This document shows, in pieces, positions 7,443-64,000 of a stretch of DNA of 64,000 nt. The translations under genes and the position numbers were made by a program. A model generated the notes under the pieces. That model made no database searches, was not told the DNA's origin, and was given only the letters and a program-made list of their open reading frames with translations. Positions within the stretch are counted from its first letter, which is position 1, and each line of letters starts with the position of its first letter. This DNA is from Entomortierella parvispora E1425 (Eukaryota > Fungi > Mortierellomycota): assembly GCA_020891255.1 (NCBI GenBank), contig BQFW01000001.1, forward strand, positions 1,736,001-1,800,000, in the 5' to 3' direction.

Positions 7443-8822
7443 ATGCGGATCGCCAGGGGAATCACTCATGAGCAGAGGTATCATCTCTGTCTCAAAAAGC
7501 AAGAGTGCCCAACTATGAAGCAAGCAGAGCTGGCTGCCTGGTTCGAGGCCCGGTATTCGTTCTCTATCAGTCAACCAACTATATCACATTCACTCCGGAA
7601 AAGCAGCGAGATTTTGGCTATGGGACCTTGCGCGGTGGGCATAGATTCAACGCGTGTTCGCAAGAGACCAGTCCGACATCCTGATCTGGAACTGGCCATC
7701 TATCGGTGGGTTCAATCCCAGCAGCTGGAGCAACAACAACGATGGCAGCGTCGTCAAAAGCAAATACAGCATGGGATGAAGAAGCGAATCAAAGGTCAAT
7801 CGATCAAAGGGATCGAGGAGCAAACACCACCACCGCTAGACAAACTCACAGGTCCAGCCTTAGTCCGACAGGCAAAGAAGATTGCACAGGAGATGAATAT
7901 CCAGGACACCGTCTTTTGTCCAGGCTGGCTGTCGAGGTTCAAAAGCCGATACAACATCAACTTTGTCGAGCTCAATGAGATTCCACCTCAATCCCAAGGA
8001 GCAATTACGATTGCCAATGACTCTGCCTCCTGCTCTACGTTGTCCTCTGGAATGTCTACACCTGTCTCCGGACCAACCTCAAACTCTATAATGAGCATGT
8101 CGCTGGTGGACGTTCGTCCTTCGATCGCTATTCCGTCGAGCAGTCATGGCGCCTATTCTTCACCACAGCAAGAAGCTGCGAGCTTGGCAGGCTTACAGGA
8201 TCTGGACGGATCGTCAGTGCAAGGCGTTACTACCGATGACACCAATTTCGGACAGTTGGTGTCCATCGCATCCAGCATGGATAGTGCGCCCTCGCAACAG
8301 GATTTGATACCTCCTCACCGCCCACCGCTACAACAAAGAATCATGTATGGACTGTCAAATACTGAACAATATTCATACACACATCCTCAGGATCATACCC
8401 AAAGTCAACTGCCTCATGATCACCAGCTGTCTTTACTTCAACCCTCGTCAGCATCAAGCGCATTGAGCATCGGCCTCCTTCAATCCATCCCAGCATCGGT
8501 AGCGGGTCAAGTTCCCACGGCTCAGCTTCACTCCCCCTCTGCAACACCTACTCCCATCTCTTTAACAACTTCAAGCGTGTCGACATCTCGACCCTTCACT
8601 ACCAGCAACCAGTATTCAAACAATCGTTACTCAGAGGCGCTTGCTCCTCCATTACAGGACCCTGAGGATGTACGGCAAATTCTGAGACGACTTAGGCAGT
8701 ACGCATCTTTCCATCTCAAGGACTCCTCTCGAGCTCTTGAACATCTGAATAGCTTGGAACTGGAGCTCGTTTCTTTGCAGGGCCAAAGTCATGGAGCAGA
8801 CACTGTGTGGCGAACAGAATAA
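7443..8822 (+). CDS. CENP-B / pogo(Tc5)-transposase-derived DNA-binding protein with two HTH domains and no DDE domain
   Basis: First HTH ITHEQRYHLCLKK...KQAELAAWFEARYSFSISQPTISHSLRK. Second HTH HPDLELAIYRWV...LTGPALVRQAKKIA...FCPGWLSRFKSRYNI. The remainder is S/Q/P-rich with a short C-terminal helix. Single 459-aa ORF. Confidence 0.85.
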   Translation: MRIARGITHEQRYHLCLKKQECPTMKQAELAAWFEARYSFSISQPTISHSLRKSSEILAMGPCAVGIDSTRVRKRPVRHPDLELAIYRWVQSQQLEQQQRWQRRQKQIQHGMKKRIKGQSIKGIEEQTPPPLDKLTGPALVRQAKKIAQEMNIQDTVFCPGWLSRFKSRYNINFVELNEIPPQSQGAITIANDSASCSTLSSGMSTPVSGPTSNSIMSMSLVDVRPSIAIPSSSHGAYSSPQQEAASLAGLQDLDGSSVQGVTTDDTNFGQLVSIASSMDSAPSQQDLIPPHRPPLQQRIMYGLSNTEQYSYTHPQDHTQSQLPHDHQLSLLQPSSASSALSIGLLQSIPASVAGQVPTAQLHSPSATPTPISLTTSSVSTSRPFTTSNQYSNNRYSEALAPPLQDPEDVRQILRRLRQYASFHLKDSSRALEHLNSLELELVSLQGQSHGADTVWRTE

Positions 8823-13670: not shown

Positions 13671-16600
13671 TCACATCAACAGGTCAAAGCCAGAGTCGCG
13701 ACGTGCCGCCTCTGACACTGGCACCTTCTTACCATGCTGGTCAATCGTGAATTGCTGTTGTGGGGCCTGTGCGCTGTCGTGCTTGCCGTCTCTGGTCTGA
13801 GTCTTGTTGCTCTTCTTGCCTACGACACCTTGCAACTCTCCATGGCCATGCTCAAACGAAAGCGTAGTCGTGGCTGGTGCACCGGCTCCCACTATTCCTC
13901 CACTCAGAAACTGTGGCTGACGAGCGTCATGGGGGTGGATGACATGTTGCAAAAGATGGTGCACAGGCTTCTCCTTCTCCAACCCCTGCTTGTGGTGCTC
14001 CCCGTGCGATCGGAGAGTTTCGCTCAAATGTCCAACCTCGTGGTCGTCATTGTGAGTCAAGTCTAGATGATGATGATGGTCATGATGAGCCACTGGTGCA
14101 ACCACGAAGTTCTCACTGGAGAACAAAGAGTCGTTTTGGTGAAGGTCTTGAGCACGAGTTGCCTGGCTGTGGGGTAGAGGCTGAGGACGACCTGCAATAA
14201 AGATCTCGCTAACACCGATGGCAGCGCCATGATCATTCTCATTCACATTCAATTGAACGGCGCCACTGTAACTCAATCCAGGCTCTGTGCTAGTGTGGAG
14301 AACCGAAGATACACCTGAGCGATGACTGGCCGCACTCTCGGGACGGGAGACAGCAGGTGTATCAACATGCAAATGCTTTGGATCCTTCGGCTGGAGTTTC
14401 TTCTGATGAGCTGCATGTTTCTCAACCTGTTTCAGAAGATGCGAGGACAAGGATGAAGTGGCGGCAGTAGTAGTAGTTTTCTTCTTCTCCTCCTCTTGAA
14501 CGAGATCAGGGTCCTCGACAACAATAAAGCCGTCCTTGTCATAATGATGGCTCTTCAAGTTAGGCTTGTACGCATGGCCCTCCTCTGGAACGTGCACCTC
14601 AGTATGGGATGCGGCTGCTGCCAGGTTGATGTCTTTAAGATTAGCGCCAGAACTGCTCTCGTGGGCCTTGCTTTCGCTGGAGGTCGTTGTGGACGCTGTG
14701 GGGGCCATGGAAGAAGCAGTAGTCTTGGAGGCATTCTTCTGGTTCGCCTTGTTTTGCCTCTTATTTGCCTTATTGCCACCAGCCTTGGAATCTTGGTTGC
14801 CTTTGTCATCTGCACTGGGCTTTTTCTTATTGGCGCCAGTAGCAGACTTGGTCGATGGCTGGGACGCATATTGCTGGCCGATCGCCGGCTTTGAATGCTT
14901 TTCTGCTGGAGAGGCTGAAGTGACTTGAGAGGAAACAGCGGCATGAACTTCAGCAGAGCGCGTTAGGGGGCTAGAAGTTGCCGCGTGAGCGGGAACATTG
15001 GCATGGGCTTGCGTGGGGCTGCTGCCTCGAGAGATGGTCTCTGTTGCAATCTCCTTGACCTCCTTCACGGCCTTGGAGACCGAACTCTTGGCACCTGTGA
15101 TCATCTCGGATACATTATCGGCCACATCAGCCAAGCTGTCAGTCGCGCCGCTCACAGTATTTTGGGCTGTACCTAAGACTCCGCGACTCGAGTGTGTTGC
15201 AAGGGAAGAACGCCCCGAAGTTCTGGAAGAGGACTCTGAGGTAGCCTTCTTGGTTACATTGACAGTAGCGCTTGACGCGTTGGCTTCGGTCTGGGCCGAT
15301 TGTGCAAGCGTCTTCGGGGAGTGAGAGGGCGCGTGCTCGAGGCAGTCAGACTGAACCTCGTCATCGTCTTGATCGTTTTCCTCGGGTTCCTCGTGGCCAG
15401 CAATGTTCTCGGTAAAGTTGTCGACCATCTCTTCAATCATGTGCTTAGCGTTATCAAAGTTCTCATAACCAACATCCGCTGCTTTAGCGACAATGGCACT
15501 AGCAGCGACTTTAGCATGGTGAAGAATGGATGGAGCTGAAGCAAAAATGCTATTTCCACCTGCTCCTTTGGACTGGTCATCATCCTCATCCTTGTCAGAG
15601 TCCTTGTCAGCCTGCTCCTCGCTCACACGATCTCCGTCTTTGTTCCTGTAGACATAGTCGTCGTGATCCAATGTAAGGGACGCCTTCTTCTTTGATGAAC
15701 TGCGGCCCTTGCTCTTGGATTGTCCAGAGGCAGAAGAGGATGCTGAGGATGACGACTTGCCAGCTGTAGCGCCTTTAATGCTCTTGGCGACAATCTCTTC
15801 AGTCTTATGTGCCTTAGAAAGAGCTGAGTCCAGAGTTGACTTGGCGTCATGGCTTCCTTTTTGCGCTTTTGTCTCTTCCCTGGTTGCCGCAGACTTCAAA
15901 CTTTGTGCAACATGGTCCTCAGTTTCGTAAGCAGTGGCAAGGGCATTGTCCATGACAATTTTTGCTGCGTGACTCGACTTTCTCGCCGTCCTCTTGGAGT
16001 CCTGTTCATACTTCTCCGCGGCCTCGCGAGCACCTTGAATTGCTGCTTCAACAGTACCCCTTCCAATCTCAACAGCAGACCCGAGCATATGCTCGGCCTG
16101 ACGAACTGGAGTGACCACATTCTGGACAATTGCGTTTTTGGCAGCGCCTATAGCAGAGTCGACGTTGGCTTTGGCTTGATGAACTGCTCCTTGAGCAGCC
16201 TGACTTGCCCGTTGCACGGCCGCATCCTTTGCCTGATAAGCAGTCCCAATGGCGCCGTCAACGGACTTCCTGGCTCCCAGAGCGACAGTCTTAGCAGCAA
16301 ACTCGGCCTGTTTGACGCCTTCTTGGGCGCCATACACGACAGCATCTTTGGTCTTTTGAGCGGCTCCAACAGCAGATCCAATGGTCTCTCTGGCCTTTGC
16401 AACTGCATTTTCTGCGGCCTCACGAGCATCGTGCGCAGACTTGTGAAGGCTCTTGGAAGCGGCTTCCGTAGACATTTGAGCCATATTTAAAACTGTAGCC
16501 TCTGCGTCATGCACAGTCTTGGGCACAGCATGGACAGCACCAGAAACGGTTCCTTCGATAGAGCTAAAAGTGCTTTGGACGGTATTCACGGCGCTCTTTT

Positions 16601-19600
16601 TGACATTTTGAGCAGACTCGACCGCAGCGTCGACCGTCTCAATTGCTTGGTGAATTGTCTTGCCAAGGGAATCATGGGCGACATGGGCTGCCTGCAAGAT
16701 CAACTCTTCTGCACCCTCAACAGTTCCAACCATATCCTTGACGACCGCACCTGCTGCCTCACGGGCGAGGCCTAACGCTGACTCGACGTTTTTTTCAGCG
16801 CCATGAGCGGCCACTTGGAGCACAGCTTCGCCCTTGGCAACAGCATCTTGGGCGCTGTGAATAGCAGCCTGCACACTGGACTTGCCCTGCTCAACCGCTT
16901 GACCGACAATGGCTTTCGCCTCTTTAGCAGCTTGCTGAGCCGCTTCATCGACCTCGGCGGACATGGCCTTCACGTCGTGGATAGCCGACTGAAGATCCTC
17001 TTTGGTTTGATCCGCAATTTGACCAGCAATTGCCTTGGCATCATGGGCAGTGGTTTGGAGTGCGGCCTCACCCTTGGCAACAGCATCCTTGGCGCCATGA
17101 ATAGCAGCCTGAACACTGGACTTGCCCTGCTCAACCGCTTGATCGACAATGGCTTTCGCCTCTTTAGCAGCTTGCTGAGCGGCATCGTCGGCCTTGGTAG
17201 ACATGGCCTTTACGTCTTGGATGGCCGCCCCCTTGACTTTGGATGCGACTTTGACAGCTGATTGCAAATCCTCTTTCGTTTGATCAGCAATTTGACCAGC
17301 AATAGCCTTGGCGTCATGAACCGCTTGCTTGGCAGCGCTGTCAACTTTGGTTGCAGTCTCTTCCATCTGCTTGATTGCACCGGCAGTTTTCTTGGCTGTA
17401 GAGTCCTTAGCCCTTGAGAAGGCTTGAGACGCTTCCCTTGCAGCATGTTCAGTGCTATCGGCTACCTCCTGAACCAGATGCTTTGCCTTCTTGGCAACTT
17501 GGGAGGCGTCTTTAGCGGCATGTTTAGTGCTGCCTGCTGCCTGCTGGGCAGTATGGCCCGCCTTCTTGAGGGAAGAATCCACAGACTTCTTGGATTCCTC
17601 TGCCACCTTCTTGATATGGGCTGGGGCTTCATTGAATACTTTTTGGACCTTGGATGCGGCATCTGCAGTGGCAGATGACGTATTCTTGAAGGAGGCAGAG
17701 GTTGAAGAACCATGCTGCTTATCATCAGTGGCCTTCGATGATGATGTGGTTTTCTCCTGATGCTTGTTGCTGCCCGAAATTGCACCATGGCTGGAAGAAT
17801 CTGGGGCCCAATCGGCAGCGCCAGCATTGTTGCTCATGTCTGCACCCTTATTGTCGCCTTGAGTGGCCGTCGAAGACTTGGGCCAGGACTTGGAGGCATT
17901 GGCAACATTGTGAGCTGCCACGGCGTCAATCTTGGAAGCAACCCCTTTAACATTAAGGCCGGCGGTGACTGTGGATGATCCCGACGAGTGGGCGCGGCTT
18001 TGGGAGAGATCAATGCTCTCTGCAATGTTGTCCTTGGCCTTTTCGCTGTTCGACCTAGCTTGACCACCGCTCAAGCCAACACTAGTATGTTGCTTAGTAG
18101 AGCTAAGGGTTGGGGTTGCTGATGCAGGCTCAGATTCTTCAACCTTGGCCTTTGTCTTTTGCTCAAGCTTCGGATTAGGACGCGCAGAAATATCCTCGGT
18201 GGACACCTTAGAATGGCTGGCGGACTTGGGTGCTGCAATAGGGGCAGAAGGAGCAGTATTCGACGTGTTACTGGCGTTCACATTTGCGGTGCCAGTACTG
18301 TCCTTGTGGGAATTGGCGGCATTGGCGGCGGCGGCGGACCCAGCGGTGGCGGCAGCGGCAGCAACAGCATTGGCCAAGCCTGGCTGACCTTGAGCAACGC
18401 TTCTCCGTCGTAGGCGTGGTGCATTGGCGGCCCTTGCTGGCTCTTTTGTAGCAGGGATACCGGAAGCATCAGTCGAAGCTGCTGAAGAAGAACTGGTCGA
18501 TGCTTTGCCACTTTTGGCCGTCGAAGATGCATTGGAGGTTTGTTTGCCCTTCCCAAAGACGCTTCCAATGTGAGAGGATGAAGCCTTGGAGTGGGTGTCC
18601 ACATTTGACTGCTTGGCATGAGATGGCGCTGAAGTGGCGAAGGATGGTGCAGTGGACAAAGAGGACGAGGCATGAGAAGAGCTTTGGGCCTGGCCGCTAG
18701 TTTTGCTGAATCCCCAGCCTTCATCTTGATCAATGCCAGAGCCCTCCATACCTTCGTCCAGGGCCTCACTGAATGAATCCTTTAGCTCTTCACCCAGTTC
18801 TGATCGTTTGAAAAGCAAAAATAAAAGGGTTTGGTTAATGATAACTTTTTGATGGGCAAACTCCTTTCACATGGGCTGATGATAAGGTAAGTGCACATAC
18901 CAGACCACGATTGAGGCAAATTTCCTTTCAAGGTGTTCGTGGCTGCTTCCGCAGTGTTGGTCAACATTGCGACTGTCGCCAAAGTAGCTCCAAGGACTCC
19001 GCCAGAGATGCCATCCAAATTCTTCCACATGGGGTTATTCTGAGCAAATTCCATGATCTTGAAAGCAAATCCTGACTGTGGAGCGTCCTGTCCATGCTGT
19101 CTTCCATTGGAGGATGACGATCCCCCCGTCTTACCAAAGGCACGGGAATGAGAAGAAATATGAGGCTGATGGCGGTGTCGGTCAGCCTCCTTGAAGCTGT
19201 GAGCGCGAGGAGTGCGAGTGCGAGTGCGCATGGAGGGAGACTCCAGGGAATCCGAGCCAGGTCCGGCAGGTCCAGATCCAGCTCCAGCGCGCTTCTTTTC
19301 TTGCTGAGGCTGTTGGGCGCCAGGGGCAAAGATGTGTTGATGACTTTCGAGATAATCCGCGTTGGTCTCGTGAAGTTCAGCCATGGGCTTCCAGCTAGAG
19401 GAGTCGGTACCAGAACTGGATTGATCGGCCTTCGTGGCCTTGTTCATGTCTGCGGACGAGCGGTGTGCCTTGTCTGTGGACTGGCGACCATCCTTTTCAG
19501 AGGCGGCGGCAGCGGCGGCTTCGGTCTCCTCATTCACATACTTTTCACGGTTATCCTTTCCGATTTCTGTCTGCTCCTGTTGAGCGTCCGATTGTCCAAC

Positions 19601-54134: not shown

Positions 54135-55912
54135 GTACCGATAGATGAAAGTCTGGAGAAAGAATGAATGAGAGAGGCAGACTTGAGGCTGAATGATCGT
54201 GAGGAGACGGAAAGGGCGTGATCAGTATTTATAATGGCCCAATGTCCCTGGGAAACACACCCGTGGTGAGGCGCCAGGATGGCATCGGAATGGCATACAG
54301 AGATGAGACCCGAGGCAAGCTGGCTGCAGCGACAAGTAGCCCATACAAGGACATCTTCATTCATCCTTGCACAGTCATCTTCCTCTGTGTGTTTTTTTGT
54401 TTTTTGTTTTTTGTGTTTTCGGGCAATGCCTTCGATACTGGAATCCATGTTGGGAACCCTCGTTTATTACATTCGCACGGTCACCCTTTTGTTGGCTTTG
54501 GTGTGCAGCTGCTGATAACTGACTCTCGACAATGACGATGAATACCAAAGATTGCAGGTAGTCAGATCATCGCCTTGAAATCCCAAATGGGACAGCCAGT
54601 AAACAGTGGAATCGGATCCAGTTTCCTCTCACTTCCCATCAGTCCTTGACAGGATGCACTCTCTATTTCTCTGCTCTCTATCTGCTTCCTTCTCTCGCAG
54701 AAAGAAATGAAAAAGAACACGGAGACACGATCTGGTCCTTCCATGCGATCGTCCAGCAATAAAGGAGACAACTTTCCCCGCCCCCTTGCCAGTCCGATCT
54801 GCGCTTTGCGCCCGTCTTGGTAGCAAACAATGACAACAATCCTAATGCGCGTCCAGCACAGCCATCGCTGTCGCATCTGATGTCTGTTTTGATTCACTGC
54901 GAAGCATGCACTCGAGAACAGACATTCCCTGGGAATTCGATGGGGCCATTCCACTGATTTGTTTCGGTCCCCAGGGGTCGATATCCCCGGGATTGGCTGG
55001 TTTGGAACGTCGTTGTGTCGTGTGCCCGCGAAGGGCTTCGAAATGGCTGAGACCTCGGTGGACGTGCGCCCTCTCAATGCTTTGCTCGAGCCCACGCCAG
55101 TGTCATGGTCGTGCTCTGCCTGCTCTTTGCACCGTGTCACTCCTGTGTGTATTTTCGGTCCAAGTAATCCACAGTGATGAGCAGAAATGAGCAACGGTCG
55201 GTGGGGTGTGCGCCGTAGCTCCTTGCTCTGTTTGGTGGCGTCTGCATTGTCAATGCAATAAATCTCTATGCCTTTTGCCTATCCGTCGTCTCTCTTGTTT
55301 CGTTGACTCTCCCCTTCCACCTCACTCTTGCTAATAGTCGCTCTGATATCTTTTTGGACGACAGGCGAATCTCAATCATGCAAAAAATGGGCCATTGACG
55401 TATGGTTGATGCCTGTGCTACCTTCGTTTTCCTTCACACTGCTCTCGAACCTTTGATGATAAAAAAATCGGAGTGCCGAAGTCCGAGGAAACGGACGAGA
55501 AAGGCGGTCAGTGGGCTTTGGGCAAGAGTCCATTTTTTAGTGTTTTGTAGTAGACCATAGCCCGCCTCTTGTCCTGCCCATATGACAGCATGCACAAATC
55601 CCGCCGCTTGGCTGGTTCTCTGACTGCCCAGGCCCATTGATTGCTCCAAAACTCCTGCCAGGTGCCTTATGGCCGCGCCTCGGATCTTTCCTGTGTCCCA
55701 GGCTGCATTGCTCTCACTGCCTACAAAAGTACAAATGCACCACACCCCTGGTTAGTTCACGACTCTTTGGCCGTTGTCATTGCTCACATTTTTTTTTTTT
55801 TTTTTGGTATTTGGACCGGGATTTCGCTCGTTTCCTTCTTCTCTCTTCTTCCTCACGCTCTCTTCTCGATCCCCCCATCTCCTCCCTCACACAGACAACA
55901 AGAATAACTGCA

Positions 55913-58447
55913 ATGGATTTCCTTGGTGATATTGCGCATACCGTCTCTGACAGGATTTCGCATATTATCCATGGTGACGAACACCATGAGAACGAGGATC
56001 AGGTCAAGAACCTCTCCGTTCAAGACCCAAACAACGCCATCGCTGATCGCAACCCTCTTCTTGACGACGATGAGGAAGTCGAGGACGCTGCAATTGAGGC
56101 CGCCCGCCAAGAATACGAAAGCATCAAACCTTCCCCTCAGTTCAAGTGCGGACCCGTCCTCCGTTACCAAGATACCCTCGTGGACCAGCGTCGCTGGGTT
56201 GGTTCTGTCCTCGTCGTCACCGATCGCCAGGACCCTCCCCGCCTTGTTATCCAGGACCCCACGAAATCTCAGGTCGGTTACGCTTCTCCTCGCAGACTCG
56301 AGACCTGGGAGGGTAATCACTTTTACCGTTATGAAATCCAACTTTCACTTCTGAAAAAGCGTGAAAAGAACATCAAGTACTGGTTCGAGACTGAAAACGG
56401 TCGCCGCGTTCAGACTCCTCAGACTTGGAACTTCTTTGTGCCCGCTTTGGAGAATGCCTTCAACTGGGCCTTTTACTCCTGCAACGGATTTACCTCGGAT
56501 GTGGAGGATCCCGAAACCAACTTCCATGGCGCGAACCCGCTCTGGGACGATCTTTTGGCTGCCCACGACGGAAAGCCTTTCCACGCCATGGTCGGAGGTG
56601 GTGACCAGATTTACAACGATGATGTGTTGGCGACCCCAGAGATGGTTGAGTGGCTGGCATTGGATGAGGAAGCACGCGTTGCAACCGAGTTCACAAACGA
56701 CAAGAAGTACGCGGTCGAGAAGTTCTACTTTGATCACTACACCTCCCACTTTACCTCAGGCACTTACTCCAAAGCCCTCTCCTTAATTCCCATGGTCAAC
56801 TGCTGGGACGACCATGATATTATTGACGGATACGGCTCCTACCCCGCCAAGTACCAATTGTGCGCCGTTATGCAAGGTAAGGGTCCTTTCGCAGAATGAG
56901 TGAGTGTGTGGGAATGGACATCTTTTTGAACGAATGCCCGGATTGCCATCATCTCGGGTCGATGTGCAGCAGGTTACGGCATCAGTGTGTTTTACCGAGC
57001 CACGAATTTTGTGTTTGTTTGTGTCTGTGTTTGGACCTTGCGCGTGCCACACGCACATGGGCTAAGGAGCAAAGCGAAACGCCTGGAAGGGGAACCATTT
57101 TCATTGTCCATTGCGCTGACCTTTCTCTTCCCTCCTCTATTACGTAGGTATCGGTGCCGCTGCCGCCAAGTTCTACCTCCTCTTCCAGCAGCATGCTAGC
57201 GGCAACACCACTGAGAAGGCCGGCCTTATTACCGCGTCGTCCGGAAAGGGTTGGAGCTGCATCACCCACTTTGGCAAGCGTACGCTTATGGTCTTGCCCG
57301 ACACTCGCTCGGAGCGCTCCAAGGAGACTATTCTTTCTGATTCTACCTATGAGCTCCTTCAGCAACAGATCAATGCCCAGCTCTTGCCCTCGACCCGCCA
57401 CTTGGTCATTGTCCTTGGTACCCCTCTCGTTTACCCTGCCTTGACCCTCTTTGAGGATGCCTTGGAAACCATGGGCGAGACTTTGTCTCGCGGAGGCATC
57501 ATTGGCAAGGTTTTTGGAAAGTGCAAGGCCTTTGAGAACGTGTTGGGACAGTTTGGACCCGAACTGTTGGATGATTTGGTAAGTTGAAAGAAAAAAAAAC
57601 GAGAGGAAAACACAAACGAGGGCTCTCGTGCTGCTCTTGTCTGGTCTTTTCTCGGGGATACAAAATCATTATGCAGGGCTGCAGGGCTAAAGAACCTCAA
57701 GAATAGCAAGATCTCAAGCTAACAGAAAACCACTCCGACTTTATTAGGTCGACTCTTGGGCCTGCAACATCCACACTGCCGAGAAAAAGAAATTGGTCGA
57801 GTTGTTGCAAACTATTGCTGTCCAACGCGGCGTCCGTGTTACCTTCGTCGGCGGTGATGTAAGTTATAGGCACTCACTATCCTGTCTGGGCTGGAACATC
57901 TTTTCAAGAACACTCAACTTACCCATGCTTCATTCCCTGTATCCCAACTCTCAATAGGTTCACGTCGGAGGCGCCGGTCGTCTTTTCGGTACCACCAGCA
58001 CCTCGCCTCTGCGTGATCCTTACCACATGACTCAGATTGTGTCGTCCGCCATCGTCAAGTAAGTCCCTTTTTTATTTCCTTTCTATTGAATTCAGAACCA
58101 ATTGCTTGAACCTTGATCAAAACACTTATCGCCTCTGCCTATTCTTGCCCCCATTCTACAGCGGTCCTCCTCCTGGCGCCGTTATTTCTGCTCTTCACAG
58201 ATCGTCAAAGACCTACCCCTTGAACGACTTTACTTCCGAAGAGATGACAGAAATCTTCAACCAAGATGTCACTGGTGAGGACCTCGAGCAGAAGAAGCTC
58301 CTGAACCGTCGTAACTGGTGCGAGGTGCGTGAGCTGTCTGGCTTTGAACTCGAGTTCACCATTCGCATCGAGAATGAGGACCATGTCGGTACTAAGAAGT
58401 ACCCCATCCTTGTTGACCGCTTGGAGATTGCTGAGCGTGAGCAGTAA
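55913..58447 (+). CDS. PhoD-like (alkaline phosphatase D family) metallophosphatase, fungal type, multi-exon
   Basis: Motifs CGPVLRY, WAFYSCNGF, FHAMVGGGDQIYND, NCWDDHDIIDGYGSY, VTFVGGDVHVGG and MTQIVSSAIVN. Confidence 0.88.
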
Positions 58448-58599
58448 ACACCAAACTTGTCTATATTTTGTACAAATAAATGCGATCACAATCCAACCAA
58501 CCAAGGTGCTTTTTTTTTTTGGCGTTTTTATGAAGGCGAAGCATCGTCGACTAGTACAGCTAAACTTCCCGAAATGCATAAAGACGTGAGAATAAATTA

Positions 58600-58710
58600 G
58601 TTGAAAATACAAAGGTTTGTGCTTTTGTCTCGGATTTTTGTTGCACTTACCGATGCTGTAAAGAAGGTTGTGCTCATTCCACATGAGCCTCACTCGCGCG
58701 AGTGAACTTT
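58600..58710 (-). ncRNA. Candidate Fanzor omega-RNA scaffold overlapping and following the stop codon
   Basis: Perfect 16-bp palindrome TCACTCGCGCGAGTGA (58690-58705), hairpin GCTCAT-GTGGA-ATGAGC (58672-58688) and stem TCGG...CCGA (58653-58630). The position matches known TnpB/Fanzor guide RNA loci. Boundaries are a guess. Confidence 0.4.
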
Positions 58711-61700
58711 GGCGAGCGCTTTGTCGAGAGGCGCTGGCCATGTCTGTGTTTGTAGGTGAGTACCCAGACATCTGGCGAGATTTTCGCCGGCGTTATGGTC
58801 TCTGTCGATGTCCCAACTGCAGTTTTCACAAAGGATGGATCTGCCTTTCTGAACTGCCCGGAAGCGACATCGGCTGCAGAACTGACTGGATCGAAACTCC
58901 GGGAGCTTCACCGCTGGGATGCCATTGGCATTCGCCTATAACGTATAAGAGAACCAGATGTTAGATATAACACCCCTTACTCTCTTTGAAAATCGACTCC
59001 AGCAACACTTACTGTCCGCGCTAGTTCGTCCAAGGTTTTTTCCTTTCGGCCGCCAAAGTCCCCGTCACCTATTCCAAGAACGGCTGGCGTCTCTCGATAC
59101 TCCTGAACTTCAGTCGGTGGAATATTCGGGTGGGGAATATGCGCCATCTTGATAGCCGCTGCACAGACCAGGCTTCTGTCGCTTCGAATCGCCGTCCTCA
59201 TATCATGAAGATCCTTCTTGAAACTGATTGATCCGTAAAAGGTCCTTAGCTTCTCAAATGCAGCGAGGCGAGGTCTGAGCCAGTCTAAGTGGTTACTATA
59301 GAGTGCGCTGGCAGCTGCCCTCCAATCGCAAACCGTTGTCCCGTTTTCCTGTGTGACCTTCACTTGTACGGGAGCAACATCTGCAATCAATGTGTTCTCC
59401 AGTTTGTCGATCCCATGGGTCTTTTTCTTTGCATTTAGACATCCCATGTATCGCTTTTGAATGTCTTTAGCCACGGTGTCGGTGATATCGAGGGTCTGTG
59501 AAAAGTCAGGGTACTTGGTGTGTACTGCGACCACGCTTGCAGGTTTCGCCCGGCCTGGATCTACCCCGATCCCGATAAAATGCGGGCCACCCAAAGACTG
59601 AACACGCTGCGCTGTTGAAAAGAGGTCCTGGACATACGGTAGGGCTTTCGCATGTACTGCTGCAGTCTTTACGCCTGCGAGGTTTCGCTGTGCCACCTGT
59701 CCCTGCCCTGGATTTCCATGTCCAACACTGGGACCCTCATTAGGATTTTCAGTCTCACTTCCAGGCAGGCTCTCCTCCAGCACAGGATCAGGAGACGTCC
59801 AAAGCTCTGAGTCGTATATATCCAAGGACGAAGGTAAAGCGGAGGATGCAGCAAAAGGTAGAGCGGAAGGCAGAGCAAGAAAACCTTCCTCTGGAGCTAC
59901 GGCAGGGATATTGTGCTGATAACCACTGCCGGTAGGACTGGAGTTGCTCTTCGTATTCTTCTTTGGGTGTAATGTGGTCAAATCAAAAGCCAACACATGG
60001 AGGTTATGACCGTCCGTCTTGATGACACCCGTCGGAACATAGTGTCTTCGAGGTGTGTTCTCGGCGCCACTGCTCGACCCCGCATGCAGACCATGTAGAG
60101 TCACGTCTCGCAGTTGTCGTTGTTGTGTAGCTGACATGTTGCTTAAAACGTCCTTCAGCCGTTGTAATTCAACCTCCATCGACTTGAGGGCGTTCGAGAT
60201 TGATCCACTAGTCGTATAGATGTTCGCGATGGTGGGGGGAGGGTTACCAGGAAGCTGTGACCATTGCCCCTGAAACACCGAGATACGATGGAGTAAATCT
60301 TGAGAATCTGCCAGCCCTGGGTCCTGTTTTTTAGCCAAACTGGAGCATTCCTTCAGGAGAGCGCAGAGTGTTTTGTCGATTGATGTGTATTCATCCAGGT
60401 GCTCCAGCTCTGTTTGAATTCTCAGGCGCGAATCAGGGATGAACAAAGCGCGCTCACTGTTCATGGCCGGGTTCATGAGAGCAGTGCCACGTCTGTACGA
60501 GGTATTTTTCGACATGAAAAAGTTGAAAAATAGCTCCCCTCTGTGGGCGATTGCTCGCTGTTCGGCGGCCACGACCGTTCCAGTGAAGATTGCACCTAGC
60601 GCACTCTTTGTAGTTGGTGTAGGTTTGAGGTGTCGGCATGCATCAACGAACTCCCTTTCGGTTAGGTCCAGGTCCCGGTCTTTGAAGGTGATTACAGGAA
60701 ATAGCGCAACTTGACTGCCGGGTCGCAGTAACGCGTTCAGGAGCAAGTGAACGGATACGGGATCGTGCAGCTTTGACCGACCAGTGCCTTCAATCGAATC
60801 CAGGAAAAGTCGTCCTTGCTCGGACTTTGAGAATTGTATCTGCTGGACAAGAACCTAGCGAACAGGACAGAGACAAGAGTGAGCGACGAGCAAAGAGATA
60901 AAGACCATAAAACATCGCACTAGGAATGTCAAGCACTTACTCGCTGCTTAAGTTCGCCGACGTTTCTCAGAACATGGCTGCAGATTAAGTCGTGCGCGCT
61001 GCGTGCGCAAGATTCCAAGAACTTGGCGCTGACCGCCTTCTCCGGTCTCTTTGTAAAGGGGTCGAATGGGATCCCGCCGGCCTGCTGGTTGATATGCTTC
61101 TTTTTGAACTCCAGTACCACCGTAAACGCAAGCCGCTGTGTGCCTTCGCACTTGAGCTGAGTGATGGTAGCGTCTGTAAGATCGTTCCATCTCCAAAGGG
61201 CCCGGACCACATGATATACGAAGATTTGACTTGTGTAGACTGGACCAAGTGCATCTTTTCTTTTCTTGACGTCGTCTTCGTCAAGTGTGGGGTGAGACTT
61301 GAAAATAGACAGCGCATAGTCTTGCAATACCGCGATCGCCGACCAAATTGCGTCAGAGTTTGCTTTGACCAGGTCCATCATCATTGTCCGCATGGATCGG
61401 TACGTATCCTGTACTTCCAATAGTGTCGATCCCTTCATCTGGCTTTCAAGCCCTTTGTAAAGTGTGGAGCACAGAGTACCTGGCTGGAGTGCCACCTGGG
61501 AAAACGTTGTTTCCAGAGTAGCTTTAATGTGCGTGGTATCGTGCTCCCTCCTTGTCGCAGTGACTGAGCCAGCCGAAGACGTCAAGTCGCCCATCTGTTT
61601 GTTTACAGCATGTCGCGCCTTTCTGCTTGAACGGTTGTAAATGGGCTTGGAGGTAGCCGCCTTTTTTTCGTTCGTCTTTTTCTTCTTCTTTTGGCTTGCC

Positions 61701-63614
61701 TCCTGCGAAAGGGGACGCTTCTGACTGGTTGAGGCAGTAGGAATCGAAGATGAACCTGCTGGGTTGTCACCTTCCAAGATCTGGTTGACTAGATCCGTCG
61801 CAAGTGGTGCAGATCCAGTTTGGTTGTCAGAGTTGCTGGTGTGGGTTGCGTTCGGAGCGACGGGATGGACTTTTGGAGGGCCTATGGACTGATCGTATAG
61901 CCCCACGGGTCCCTCATTCCTAGACCAGCCAGGGGGAAGACTCTCCGACCAAGCTGTGCGATCATGATGCCGAATCTTTGAAAGATAGTCTGGCCGCTTT
62001 CTATCCCTCATGAATCGCAGAAAGCTATTCATAAAGTGGAGTAGTGTTTAGAAAGGGATCTTCGGCATGGTACGCTTTCTCTCTGCATAGCAATATGATA
62101 CCATACCCTTGCTTAGTCTCTGTCTGACTTGAGCTTCCTCCTTCCGGGACCACAGGCAATGATGAGGCGCTTGACCTGATGAGGGACGGATTGATGACAT
62201 TCGTTCAGAAAAGAAAAGAAAAGAAAAGAAAAAAAAAGAAAAAAAAAAAAAAAAGAGTGACAATTTGAGATATCTTACCTTGCGGTTGGTTTGGTCCGCT
62301 TGTTCCTGTTTGAGAAATCGCATAGGGGAGAAAACAAGTCAGTACTGCTGTCCTTGAGTGCCTTTCAATAGGACAAACGCTTGACACTTACCTATATCGA
62401 AGCTTGGAGACTTCATTCACGATATGCAGCATCAAGTGGTCGACGAGCTTTGCCGCATTATCCTCCAATATGATGCCGGTGTCTGTATCCTCCTTATTGT
62501 CGACGAAGATATCCACGCTGTTCTCAAAGACAGCCTGATCGATCGAATTCTGAGAGCAGAACTTCTTGACGTAGTCGACTGCCTTTGGCATGTCTGGCAT
62601 TTCGTCCATGTCGCGGATGGTATCCACAATCTTGGTAAGGCTTAGGCCGGGGACCTTTCGATCGTAATCATTCTCTGCCAGAACTGCCACAGCTTGCCAC
62701 TGTTCATAAGACAGCTCAAGACTCCCGAGAATGGCCCCGATATCATATTTGTAATACCGGCCGCCTTGAGGACTCTTGCGCAACACGTATGAAGCTCCGT
62801 GGAAAACATTGTCGCTATCAGCCGACGCGACCACCGTGTCTTCCTGCTCTTCTTCAGCATGCCTACTGATGCAGACATCAGCCTCCCCTGGGCAGGCGTG
62901 TACCTTCCATCCCTTTGAGCCGAGTTGATTGCCAAGTGTGTGCCAGTCCTTATGAGTGATTGCCTTTGTATTTATCCACGCCTTGAGCAGTGGGCCGCGA
63001 ATCCTCTTCACTAACCGAAGTAGTTGGTTCTTTGTTGGCTTGGCCTTTCCGGCTGCAGTTTTCAGGGACACTTGCGATTGCAGATGGGCAAGATGGGACA
63101 AAACGGATGATGCCTTGTGGACAAACGCTGCAATCGCTCCGATTCGAGAACGATCTCTTTTCTGGCGGGCGTATGTCTTTTGGATGGATCTGGCGCCGTC
63201 AAAGTGGAGTATTCCTTGGTCTTTAGAAAACTTTTTCGACAGTGTTTTGTCGATCGCCGCCGAGATGTCGATCTCAAATAATGCCGAGGGGACTGGAGGG
63301 AGCGTAGACTCGGAGCCGATCAGTGATAAAAACTCCGTGTTGCTCTTGATGGCATCAGTCTCAAGAGGAGGGACTTTGGTCAAAAAAAGAGAGATCTCAA
63401 CGGGAAGCATGTAGGGCGCCTCGAGGTTGGCCGAGGAGTTCATGTGATTTTTCATTTCCGCAAAGATCTTGTTGCAGCGGATGCTTCTCGCAAGCGCAAA
63501 CAAGATAGCAGGAATGTCGATGTGGACTCTCGGGAAAACATCTTTTGGCACAACTTCGGGATACTCCAGGCCTTCGATGTTGGCCAAATACGGCCAGGTG
63601 CTGGCCACGCCCAT
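58690..63614 (-). CDS. 1,496-aa fusion of an XPG/FEN1-like PIN 5' nuclease and a Fanzor1/TnpB-like RuvC-ZnF nuclease; exons 63614-62392, 62305-62279, 62175-62107, 62024-60941, 60854-59013, 58935-58690
   Basis: Five GT-AG introns, all frame-preserving; CDS 4,491 nt. PIN motifs: MGV..W, HIDIP, HFDG, PGEADV, SADSD, LAENDY..VPGL. Fanzor motifs: KTDG, IGVDPG (RuvC-I), GIGDGDF, LPEFRSSQFCSRC (RuvC-II + CxxC), CENC..IDRDHNAGENL (CxxC + RuvC-III). Confidence 0.85.
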
Positions 63615-64000
63615 CTATCACACCAAAGACGATTACACAGCTTTAGTTAGATGGATATGTACTACGCTGACTACAGTTCACTCTCCTGATGGATCTAAGA
63701 GTCCGACTCAAAGAGGACAGCGGAAGTTTGCGCTCTTTTCGCTGTGCATATGCCAAAAGCCTTGTCTCGAAAAGATACACTGTTTTTGTCCATAGAGCGT
63801 GATCCTTACAGTCGGTGACGGCAAGCTCTGAGTGTCCAAGGGCGGTGATAGATGATGATGAGTGCAGAAAAGTAGTAGTTTGTAATATTCAGTGAATAAA
63901 GCAGGGATGGTGAGAAAGGAAAGGCGCGGGGAAAGTAAAGGAGCAAGAAAGGACGAGTGGATGATCGATAGCCGATGGTTCAGGCCATCAGATTTCCCAA

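Follow-up and report, generated by a model that had tools for sequence, protein, structure and literature searches.

Does the minus strand of the Entomortierella parvispora E1425 contig BQFW01000001.1 (NCBI GenBank assembly GCA_020891255.1) carry a single gene in which a 5' nuclease of the FEN/XPG/EXO1 type is joined to a Fanzor, a TnpB-like RNA-guided nuclease, and, if so, what might the two nucleases do together? The question is raised by positions 58690–63614 of a 64,000-nucleotide (nt) stretch of this contig (positions 1,736,001 to 1,800,000), hereafter called the window and numbered from its first letter. To our knowledge, Fanzors are the only known RNA-guided DNA nucleases of eukaryotes. 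An earlier note, made from the letters of the window alone, had proposed such a fusion at this locus and had added that its author knew of no characterised protein with this architecture. A full-text literature search agreed with that statement and returned no paper describing a FEN/EXO1-Fanzor fusion; one supplementary domain figure (Jiang, PMC10530073) could hold prior notice, and a passage of the same paper remarks that Fanzors "often contain various domains". We conclude that the FEN/EXO1-Fanzor fusion is a real, undescribed Fanzor variant, the sequences of whose relatives are already public as hypothetical proteins.

The fusion gene and its relatives

The four unrelated-looking open reading frames (ORFs) from which the earlier note had started (62388–63614, 60929–62032, 58977–60746 and 58690–58911) were found exactly where it had placed them. 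When six exons were spliced in silico from 63614 down to 58690 by the removal of five introns (62391–62306, 62278–62176, 62106–62025, 60940–60855 and 59012–58936, with donors GTAAGT, GTAAGA or GTATGG and acceptors CAG or TAG), we reproduced the proposed coding sequence (CDS) of 4,491 nt, which has no internal stop, encodes 1,496 amino acids (aa) and ends with a TGA codon at 58692–58690. Two contigs recovered by a search with exon 5, the Logan contig L001 and the ENA metagenome contig L003, carry the gene in full, collinear with the window and laid out likewise in six exons and five introns (58690..63614 in the window), at 61–71% amino-acid identity to the window; in the exon 5 search the two relatives matched at 67% and 61%. 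All five intron positions, together with their GT/AG sites, are common to the three sequences, and splicing L001 and L003 in the same way gives models free of stops, of 1,536 and 1,508 aa, respectively. Because the five intron positions and the frame are conserved in relatives at this level of identity, the gene model goes beyond chance. Identities between the window and L001 were 0.79, 0.85 and 0.56 at the first, second and third codon positions, and this coding pattern of substitution was present in every large exon, the introns being 38–62% identical. The whole CDS is, as judged by this comparison, under purifying selection.

The order of the parts along the minus strand is as follows. Exon 1 (62392..63614) encodes the FEN/EXO1/XPG-type 5' nuclease domain (aa 1–407), beginning with MGV. 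Exon 2 (62279..62305) is a 27-nt micro-exon, of the same length in the window, L001 and L003, which encodes a basic KRT(K/R) motif and is flanked by AG and GT in all three lineages; intron 2, on its downstream side, holds a long T-rich tract at 62199–62264. Exon 3 (62107..62175) is a second micro-exon with conserved splice sites, which measures 69, 87 and 87 nt in the window, L001 and L003, the difference being accounted for by in-frame indels of 3 and 15 nt. Exon 4 (60941..62024) encodes a low-complexity linker and a lysine-rich run (KKKKK at about 61690) resembling a nuclear localization signal, followed by a conserved helical region; its run of lysine codons (AAG/AAA, 61660–61697) draws spurious matches from unrelated RNA runs. 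Exon 5 (59013..60854) encodes a conserved region, a disordered stretch, the RuvC-I aspartate D1233 and a GDG motif, and exon 6 (58690..58935) a relocated glutamate E1428, a zinc ribbon, the RuvC-III aspartate D1461 and the TGA codon.

The two micro-exons were the part of the earlier model that stood only in part, in that their frame and splice sites are conserved in the relatives and their inclusion in the message is unproven. They are weakly conserved (37–43% amino-acid identity over 30 residues), and, since they sum to 96 nt, skipping both leaves the frame intact. Because of this neutrality to the frame and of their own weak conservation, we regard the predicted micro-exons as likely but unproven. 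The fusion itself is independent of them.

The linkage of the two nucleases was further examined in more distant relatives. A HMMER search with exon 1 against 1.84 billion representative sequences gave 201 hits, among which proteins of 1,050–1,500 aa from Mortierella alpina, Podila epigama, Dissophora globulifera and Mortierella spp. combine an N-terminal XPG-like domain with a C-terminal PF07282 domain. The annotated fungal relatives are collinear with the window model in three segments (query residues 117–430, 520–945 and 1204–1488), the domain order is common to six Mortierellaceae proteins in NCBI, and PF07282 was detected in the relatives P0052, P0078, P0090, P0104, P0124 and P0147. Two metagenome contigs hold the combination with little or no splicing. 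In L008, an ORF of 1,102 aa free of introns encodes both the XPG-like domain and PF07282, and L005, in which one ORF of 1,173 aa runs from the XPG-like domain through the middle region to RuvC-I/II, retains only the last intron, at the position of intron 5 of the window, after which the zinc-ribbon exon follows. L005 and L008 each hold both nucleases in one ORF, so that the fusion stands whatever splice model is adopted, and the order of domains foreseen by the earlier note is thus kept in distant relatives, within single ORFs in these two. In the AlphaFold DB, the 855-aa protein A0A507C583, named "Cas12f1-like TNB domain-containing protein", has the same N-terminal fold at residues 5–283.

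The earlier note had called the gene hidden, a term that calls for some qualification: the Mortierella, Podila and Dissophora relatives were already deposited as single hypothetical proteins, one of them named only as a Cas12f1-like TNB domain-containing protein. A search for related loci with a closer alignment returned only near-copies of L001 and L003, and a word-indexed search with the full-length family alignment returned solely its own first member. The hits L009–L012, which show the XPG-like part only, lie on short contigs that end before any downstream Fanzor could appear. Pairwise identities of the two domains were saturated at 20–30%, so that their co-divergence was uninformative. 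Taken together, the fusion of an EXO1/FEN1-type nuclease with a Fanzor is kept repeatedly across Mortierellomycota, and probably in chytrids too.

The two nuclease modules and the region between them

When residues 1–407 were modelled with AlphaFold2 (AF2) from the family alignment, the model reached a predicted local distance difference test (pLDDT) score of 93.9 and a predicted template modelling (pTM) score of 0.91, and its fold is that of the superfamily, a PIN-like alpha/beta core with a helical arch and an H2TH/H3TH region. The top Foldseek match was FEN1 (3q8k, E 6e-9), with a probability of 1.00 to FEN1, EXO1 and XPG and with Rad2 also among the top matches. VIA-align gave Z scores of 21.3 for EXO1, 20.8 for FEN1, 17–20 for XPG and 15.8 for GEN1, and aligned 277 residues to human EXO1 at 3.4 Å. 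The full-length family profile matched EXO1 residues 1–261 (E 1.3e-10) and the XPG core (E 1.9e-10), and the language-model features of the Protein Atlas scored 0.96 to the XPG_I/XPG_N clusters. Pfam XPG_I remained below its cutoff (20.8 versus 24.9 bits, E 5e-4), and Pfam XPG_N gave no match in the fusion protein. PDB sequence searches with exon 1 alone, with exon 5 alone or with a three-sequence profile returned nothing, and the deeper family profiles matched. Because the XPG_I and XPG_N models are not reached and yet the family profile matches EXO1 and XPG, the N-terminal domain is placed as a divergent member of the FEN/XPG/EXO1 superfamily, outside the named orthologue groups.

The residues expected of a FEN-type site are present in exon 1, namely the metal ligands D33, D139, E244, D246, D266, D268 and D316 and the gateway residues K146 and R153; D33, D139, E244 and D316 are encoded on the minus strand at 63518–63516, 63200–63198, 62885–62883 and 62669–62667. 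Their human FEN1 counterparts (D34, D86, E158, E160, D179, D181 and D233, with K93 and R100) were assigned from motif order, spacing and the fold match rather than by a residue-level superposition. In an alignment of 48 sequences, K146 and D246 are invariant, D139, G140, R153, D266, S267, D268 and D316 occur in at least 90%, and D33 is shared by 40 and E244 by 41 of the 48 family members; most members start with MGV or MGI. By its residues, the FEN-type active site is predicted to be catalytically intact, and the domain as a whole is closest to EXO1 and FEN1. The arch of the AF2 model (residues 144–214) is an unusually long two-helix hairpin (helices 144–182 and 195–214), unlike the compact arch of FEN1.

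Human EXO1, FEN1 and XPG thus share with the fusion the fold, the MG(V/I) N-terminus, the seven acidic ligands and the gateway lysine and arginine. The fusion differs from them in being only ~15% identical, in its longer arch hairpin, in having no PCNA or mismatch-repair interaction tails and in the joining of its nuclease to an RNA-guided one. Giant-virus XPG/FEN-like proteins, including poxvirus G5, are the nearest language-model clusters (0.96) and strong fold matches; they stand alone, whereas the domain studied here is linked to a Fanzor. A scan of IMG/VR with the family motif GEADVCI gave 23 chance hits and no viral relative of the fusion, and a giant-virus carrier is therefore unsupported.

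At the other end of the protein, exon 6 matched Pfam PF07282 (OrfB_Zn_ribbon/Cas12f1-like TNB) with 42.2 bits against a cutoff of 26.3 (E 9e-11). Bao and Jurka described the motif D-X(125,275)-[TS]-[TS]-X-X-[C4 zinc finger]-X(5,50)-RD (PMC3627910), and the fusion has D1233 (RuvC-I, exon 5, 59561–59559), S1431-S1432 198 residues further on, the zinc-ribbon cysteines C1435, C1438, C1451 and C1454 of a CxxC...CxxC pattern (exon 6), and R1460-D1461, the latter being the RuvC-III aspartate (exon 6, 58800–58798), all on the minus strand. A rearranged RuvC-II, in which glycine or proline occupies the canonical glutamate site and a compensating glutamate lies elsewhere, is described for Fanzors in a passage of Jiang 2023 (PMC10530073); in the fusion, GDGxF stands at the canonical RuvC-II position (G1397-D1398-G1399, exon 5, 59069–59064, minus strand) and a conserved glutamate, E1428 (exon 6, 58899–58897, minus strand), lies ahead of the zinc ribbon. 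Conserved throughout the family are (I/L)D(P/L)G of RuvC-I, GDGxF, (D/P/N)E(F/Y)xTS, CxxC...CxxC and (D/H)RD. The family profile matched ApmFz2 (9b0l, E 1.1e-10), TnpB (9nzp, E 3e-9) and SpuFz1 (8gkh, E 1.5e-5, over ~315 residues that span RuvC and TNB), and profiles also matched 9cf0 and several TnpBs. On these motifs and profiles, the C-terminal part is identified as a Fanzor/TnpB RuvC nuclease with a zinc ribbon, its RuvC D/E/D apparently intact. Both nuclease assignments of the earlier note were therefore upheld, the N-terminal one by fold and conserved residues and the C-terminal one by PF07282, the Bao-Jurka motif and the matches to 8gkh and TnpBs.

Between the two nucleases, a region corresponding to residues 520–945 is conserved among distant homologues, with E values as low as 3e-34. 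No Pfam or Protein Atlas entry recognised this middle region, and an AF2 run on exon 5 with three sequences yielded a pLDDT of 33 and no usable fold. The conserved region of exon 5 is probably the WED/REC part of the Fanzor.

Among known systems, the fusion is most readily compared with Fanzor1 proteins (SpuFz1, PpFz1 and GtFz1; PMC10432273, PMC11423790), which are likewise eukaryotic, intron-containing and borne by mobile elements, and with which it shares the RuvC-II glycine, the relocated glutamate near the [TS][TS]-x-x-C4 ribbon, the RD that follows, and conserved non-coding sequence that links the 3' end of the ORF with the right end of the element. It differs from them in its length of 1,100–1,500 aa, in its additional N-terminal FEN/EXO1-type nuclease and conserved region, and in that no terminal inverted repeats were found; its Fanzor identity is known from motifs and profiles, not from clade placement. 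The earlier note had stated that characterised Fanzors are much smaller, and the literature bears this out, most Fz1 proteins having 600–700 aa, with a RuvC insertion in PpFz1 as the sole named exception (Xu 2024, PMC11423790). With bacterial TnpB (ISDra2), the fusion shares a RuvC and TNB core (E about 1e-7), the expectation that the guide comes from the DNA just past the right end, and a likely role in keeping or spreading the element. TnpB differs in its size of ~400 aa, in having no second nuclease and in being accompanied by a TnpA transposase; with the fusion, no transposase was seen.

Ends of the mobile element and a candidate omega-RNA

To place the gene in its element, near-identical copies were compared. 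The copies on L001, L002 and L006, and likewise those on L003 and L007, are 99.8–99.9% identical up to the motif TT(T/C)AGCTGTA, and directly past this motif the window, L001, L002, L003 and L007 continue into unrelated DNA, giving five different 3' flanks. Because the near-identical copies lose similarity exactly there, the right end of the element lies at window position 58555 (58555..58564, minus strand, ending in TTTAGCTGTA), with sequence divergence immediately after the motif. These comparisons show the fusion gene to be a gene of a multi-copy mobile element, the near-identical copies at different sites being seen in relatives. The DNA run X3, compared over window positions 58855–63614, gave short contigs that differ by ~1% and have loose ends, together with another variant of greater divergence, a pattern that fits a multi-copy family that breaks assemblies.

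The left end is less sharply drawn. A stretch of 240 nt directly upstream of the ATG (63615..63855, minus strand) is conserved at 52–62% identity and may serve as a promoter or 5' untranslated region or else belong to the left portion of the element. Two contigs, L001 and L013, begin 245–247 nt upstream of the ATG; L003 (1–1902) and L007 (1–1584), for their part, match each other at 99.9% identity over no less than 1.58 kb upstream of it. Either the L003/L007 subfamily has a long 5' part without ORFs or one of the contigs is chimeric or rearranged, and the element of the window may have its left end outside it. No terminal inverted repeats or end hairpins were found at the element ends. About 120 nt upstream of the related XPG-like ORF of L009, a fragment of a Tc1/mariner-type DDE_3 transposase is present (L009:1221–1616, E 2e-7), which may hint that mariner-like elements carry or mobilise some members of the fusion family.

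The 135 nt from the stop codon to the right end (58555..58689, minus strand) are 66–76% identical among the three lineages, as compared with 38–62% in the introns, 45–57% at four-fold degenerate sites and 29–37% past the right end. Third codon positions of exon 6 are also conserved to a raised degree (identities of 0.75 and 0.63, versus about 0.5 in other exons). The raised identity of both indicates that the nucleotide sequence itself is constrained, probably because an RNA overlaps the last part of the ORF. The stop codon is immediately followed by a hairpin, GGCUCAUGUGGAAUGAGC, with an (A/G)UGGA loop, for which compensatory changes were seen in L001 and in the distant L005. Rfam gave no match for the segment. 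Because these 135 nt are conserved above the neutral level up to the precise right end, they are put forward as a candidate omega-RNA scaffold, with a guide expected from the flank, position 58554 downwards. A PhoD-related phosphatase gene (55637–58447, plus strand) converges on the element, and, since its stop codon lies 108 nt from the right end, the presumed guide would fall in the 3' region of that gene.

Elsewhere in the window, an ORF of 1,715 aa (13671–18818, minus strand) had no Pfam match at E 1e-5. A further ORF (7443–8822, plus strand) contains Tc5/pogo-type helix-turn-helix domains (HTH_Tnp_Tc5 and HTH_ABP1_N) and would represent either a remnant of a pogo-like transposase or a CENP-B-like gene. 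The window also holds a host NPR2 gene that is 100% identical to the E. parvispora protein.

Possible roles of the linked nucleases

What might an element gain from carrying both nucleases in one chain? We lean, with a confidence little above even, towards a two-nuclease element protein in which the Fanzor part cuts, the EXO1-like domain resects, and repair is pushed towards recombination. In this scheme, the 3' end of the transcript would yield the omega-RNA, with its guide specified by the DNA that directly flanks the element on the right. The Fanzor part would then form an R-loop at matching sites, for example an empty or excised site, where RuvC would cut, and the tethered EXO1-like domain would trim away 5' strands or flaps from the broken ends. 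In this way, repair would be shifted from end joining to homologous recombination with an element-bearing copy, so that the element would be reinstalled or homed. Bacterial TnpB has a role in transposon retention, and the fusion would be a eukaryotic elaboration of it.

Several points weigh against this proposal. The division of labour between the nucleases is inferred from what is known of their families only. No RNA run was found to contain this DNA, and in two RNA runs compared with the window, matches were confined to the lysine-codon tract at 61660–61697, so that there was no RNA support for transcription, splicing or the omega-RNA, and the 3' segment of the window copy folds no better than shuffled sequences (z +1.1). 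A middle part of 400–700 residues has no explanation by fold or Pfam. The unit of ~5.3 kb holds no ORF besides the fusion and no transposase, and some mechanism of transposition is still missing from the scheme, because homing by recombination alone would not create the new insertion sites seen in the relatives.

In a stronger form of the same proposal, which we put forward only tentatively and ourselves rather doubt, the fusion would be a self-contained RNA-guided homing device that cuts the empty target and resects the break, and repair by copying the element out of a different chromosome, or a different nucleus of this coenocytic species, would make it gene-drive-like. If this were true, such a device would be a ready model for editing tools biased towards recombination or towards defined deletions.

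A different assignment of tasks, which seems to us unlikely, is that the XPG-like domain incises the R-loop, cutting the displaced non-target strand at the junction of single-stranded and duplex DNA, so that the strands would be divided between the two nucleases or the cut would take its geometry from both. Bubbles and R-loops are substrates of XPG, XPG/Rad2 matched the domain strongly too (E 1.9e-10, Z 17–20), and the long two-helix arch departs from the compact arch of FEN1. On the other hand, the RuvC triad is intact, the single RuvC sites of TnpB and Fanzor cut both strands, and EXO1 and FEN1 score slightly above XPG.

We hold it decidedly unlikely that the FEN-like domain serves RNA, either trimming the omega-RNA from the 3' end of the mRNA or removing hybrid RNA for turnover. 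The candidate omega-RNA does overlap the 3' end of the same transcript, FEN1 and EXO1 remove RNA primers, and the PIN/FEN fold includes RNases, XRN-type matches appearing lower in the viral fold search. However, the best matches are DNA 5' nucleases, the FEN1 site for DNA cleavage is complete, including K146 and R153, and TnpB processes its own RNA by RuvC.

Very improbable, in our view, is a role of the FEN-like domain as the nuclease of the element itself, which would excise or insert DNA at the element ends while the Fanzor picks the site, amounting to transposition without a classical transposase. Such a role would fit a unit of ~5.3 kb that codes for no other protein and yet occurs as near-identical copies at different sites, and in which no terminal inverted repeats were found. 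Against it, the element ends showed neither a conserved hairpin nor a structure able to form flaps, no left end could be defined, we know of no FEN-family enzyme that joins DNA, and the DDE_3 fragment upstream of one relative hints at mobilisation in trans. That the XPG-like and Fanzor ORFs are two separate neighbouring genes or the decaying fragments of a dead copy, with a coincidental spliced frame, is scarcely credible and was rejected on the single uninterrupted ORFs of L005 and L008, for the weak conservation of the micro-exons and the lack of transcript support in the RNA runs stand against five conserved intron positions with their frame, a coding pattern of substitution in every large exon and two intact catalytic sites.

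The cut-and-resect arrangement that we favour has counterparts in biotechnology and in bacteria. Engineered Cas9- and Cas12-exonuclease fusions and Cas3 of type I CRISPR systems couple an RNA-guided module to a DNA-degrading module and alter repair, with larger deletions and more recombination. The former are man-made and the Cas3 systems are prokaryotic and of several proteins, whereas the fusion is a natural single chain from a eukaryotic mobile element. It thus offers a natural single-chain design comparable to the engineered fusions, with possible use in editing biased towards recombination or larger deletions.

For the family, these data show that current surveys describing Fanzors as proteins of 600–700 aa miss a large clade with intron-split genes and proteins of 1,100–1,500 aa. 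The kept linkage of a FEN-type nuclease to a Fanzor points to the events after the cut, namely end processing and the choice of repair pathway, and the presence of two separable active sites in one protein makes the question of the natural role of Fanzors testable.

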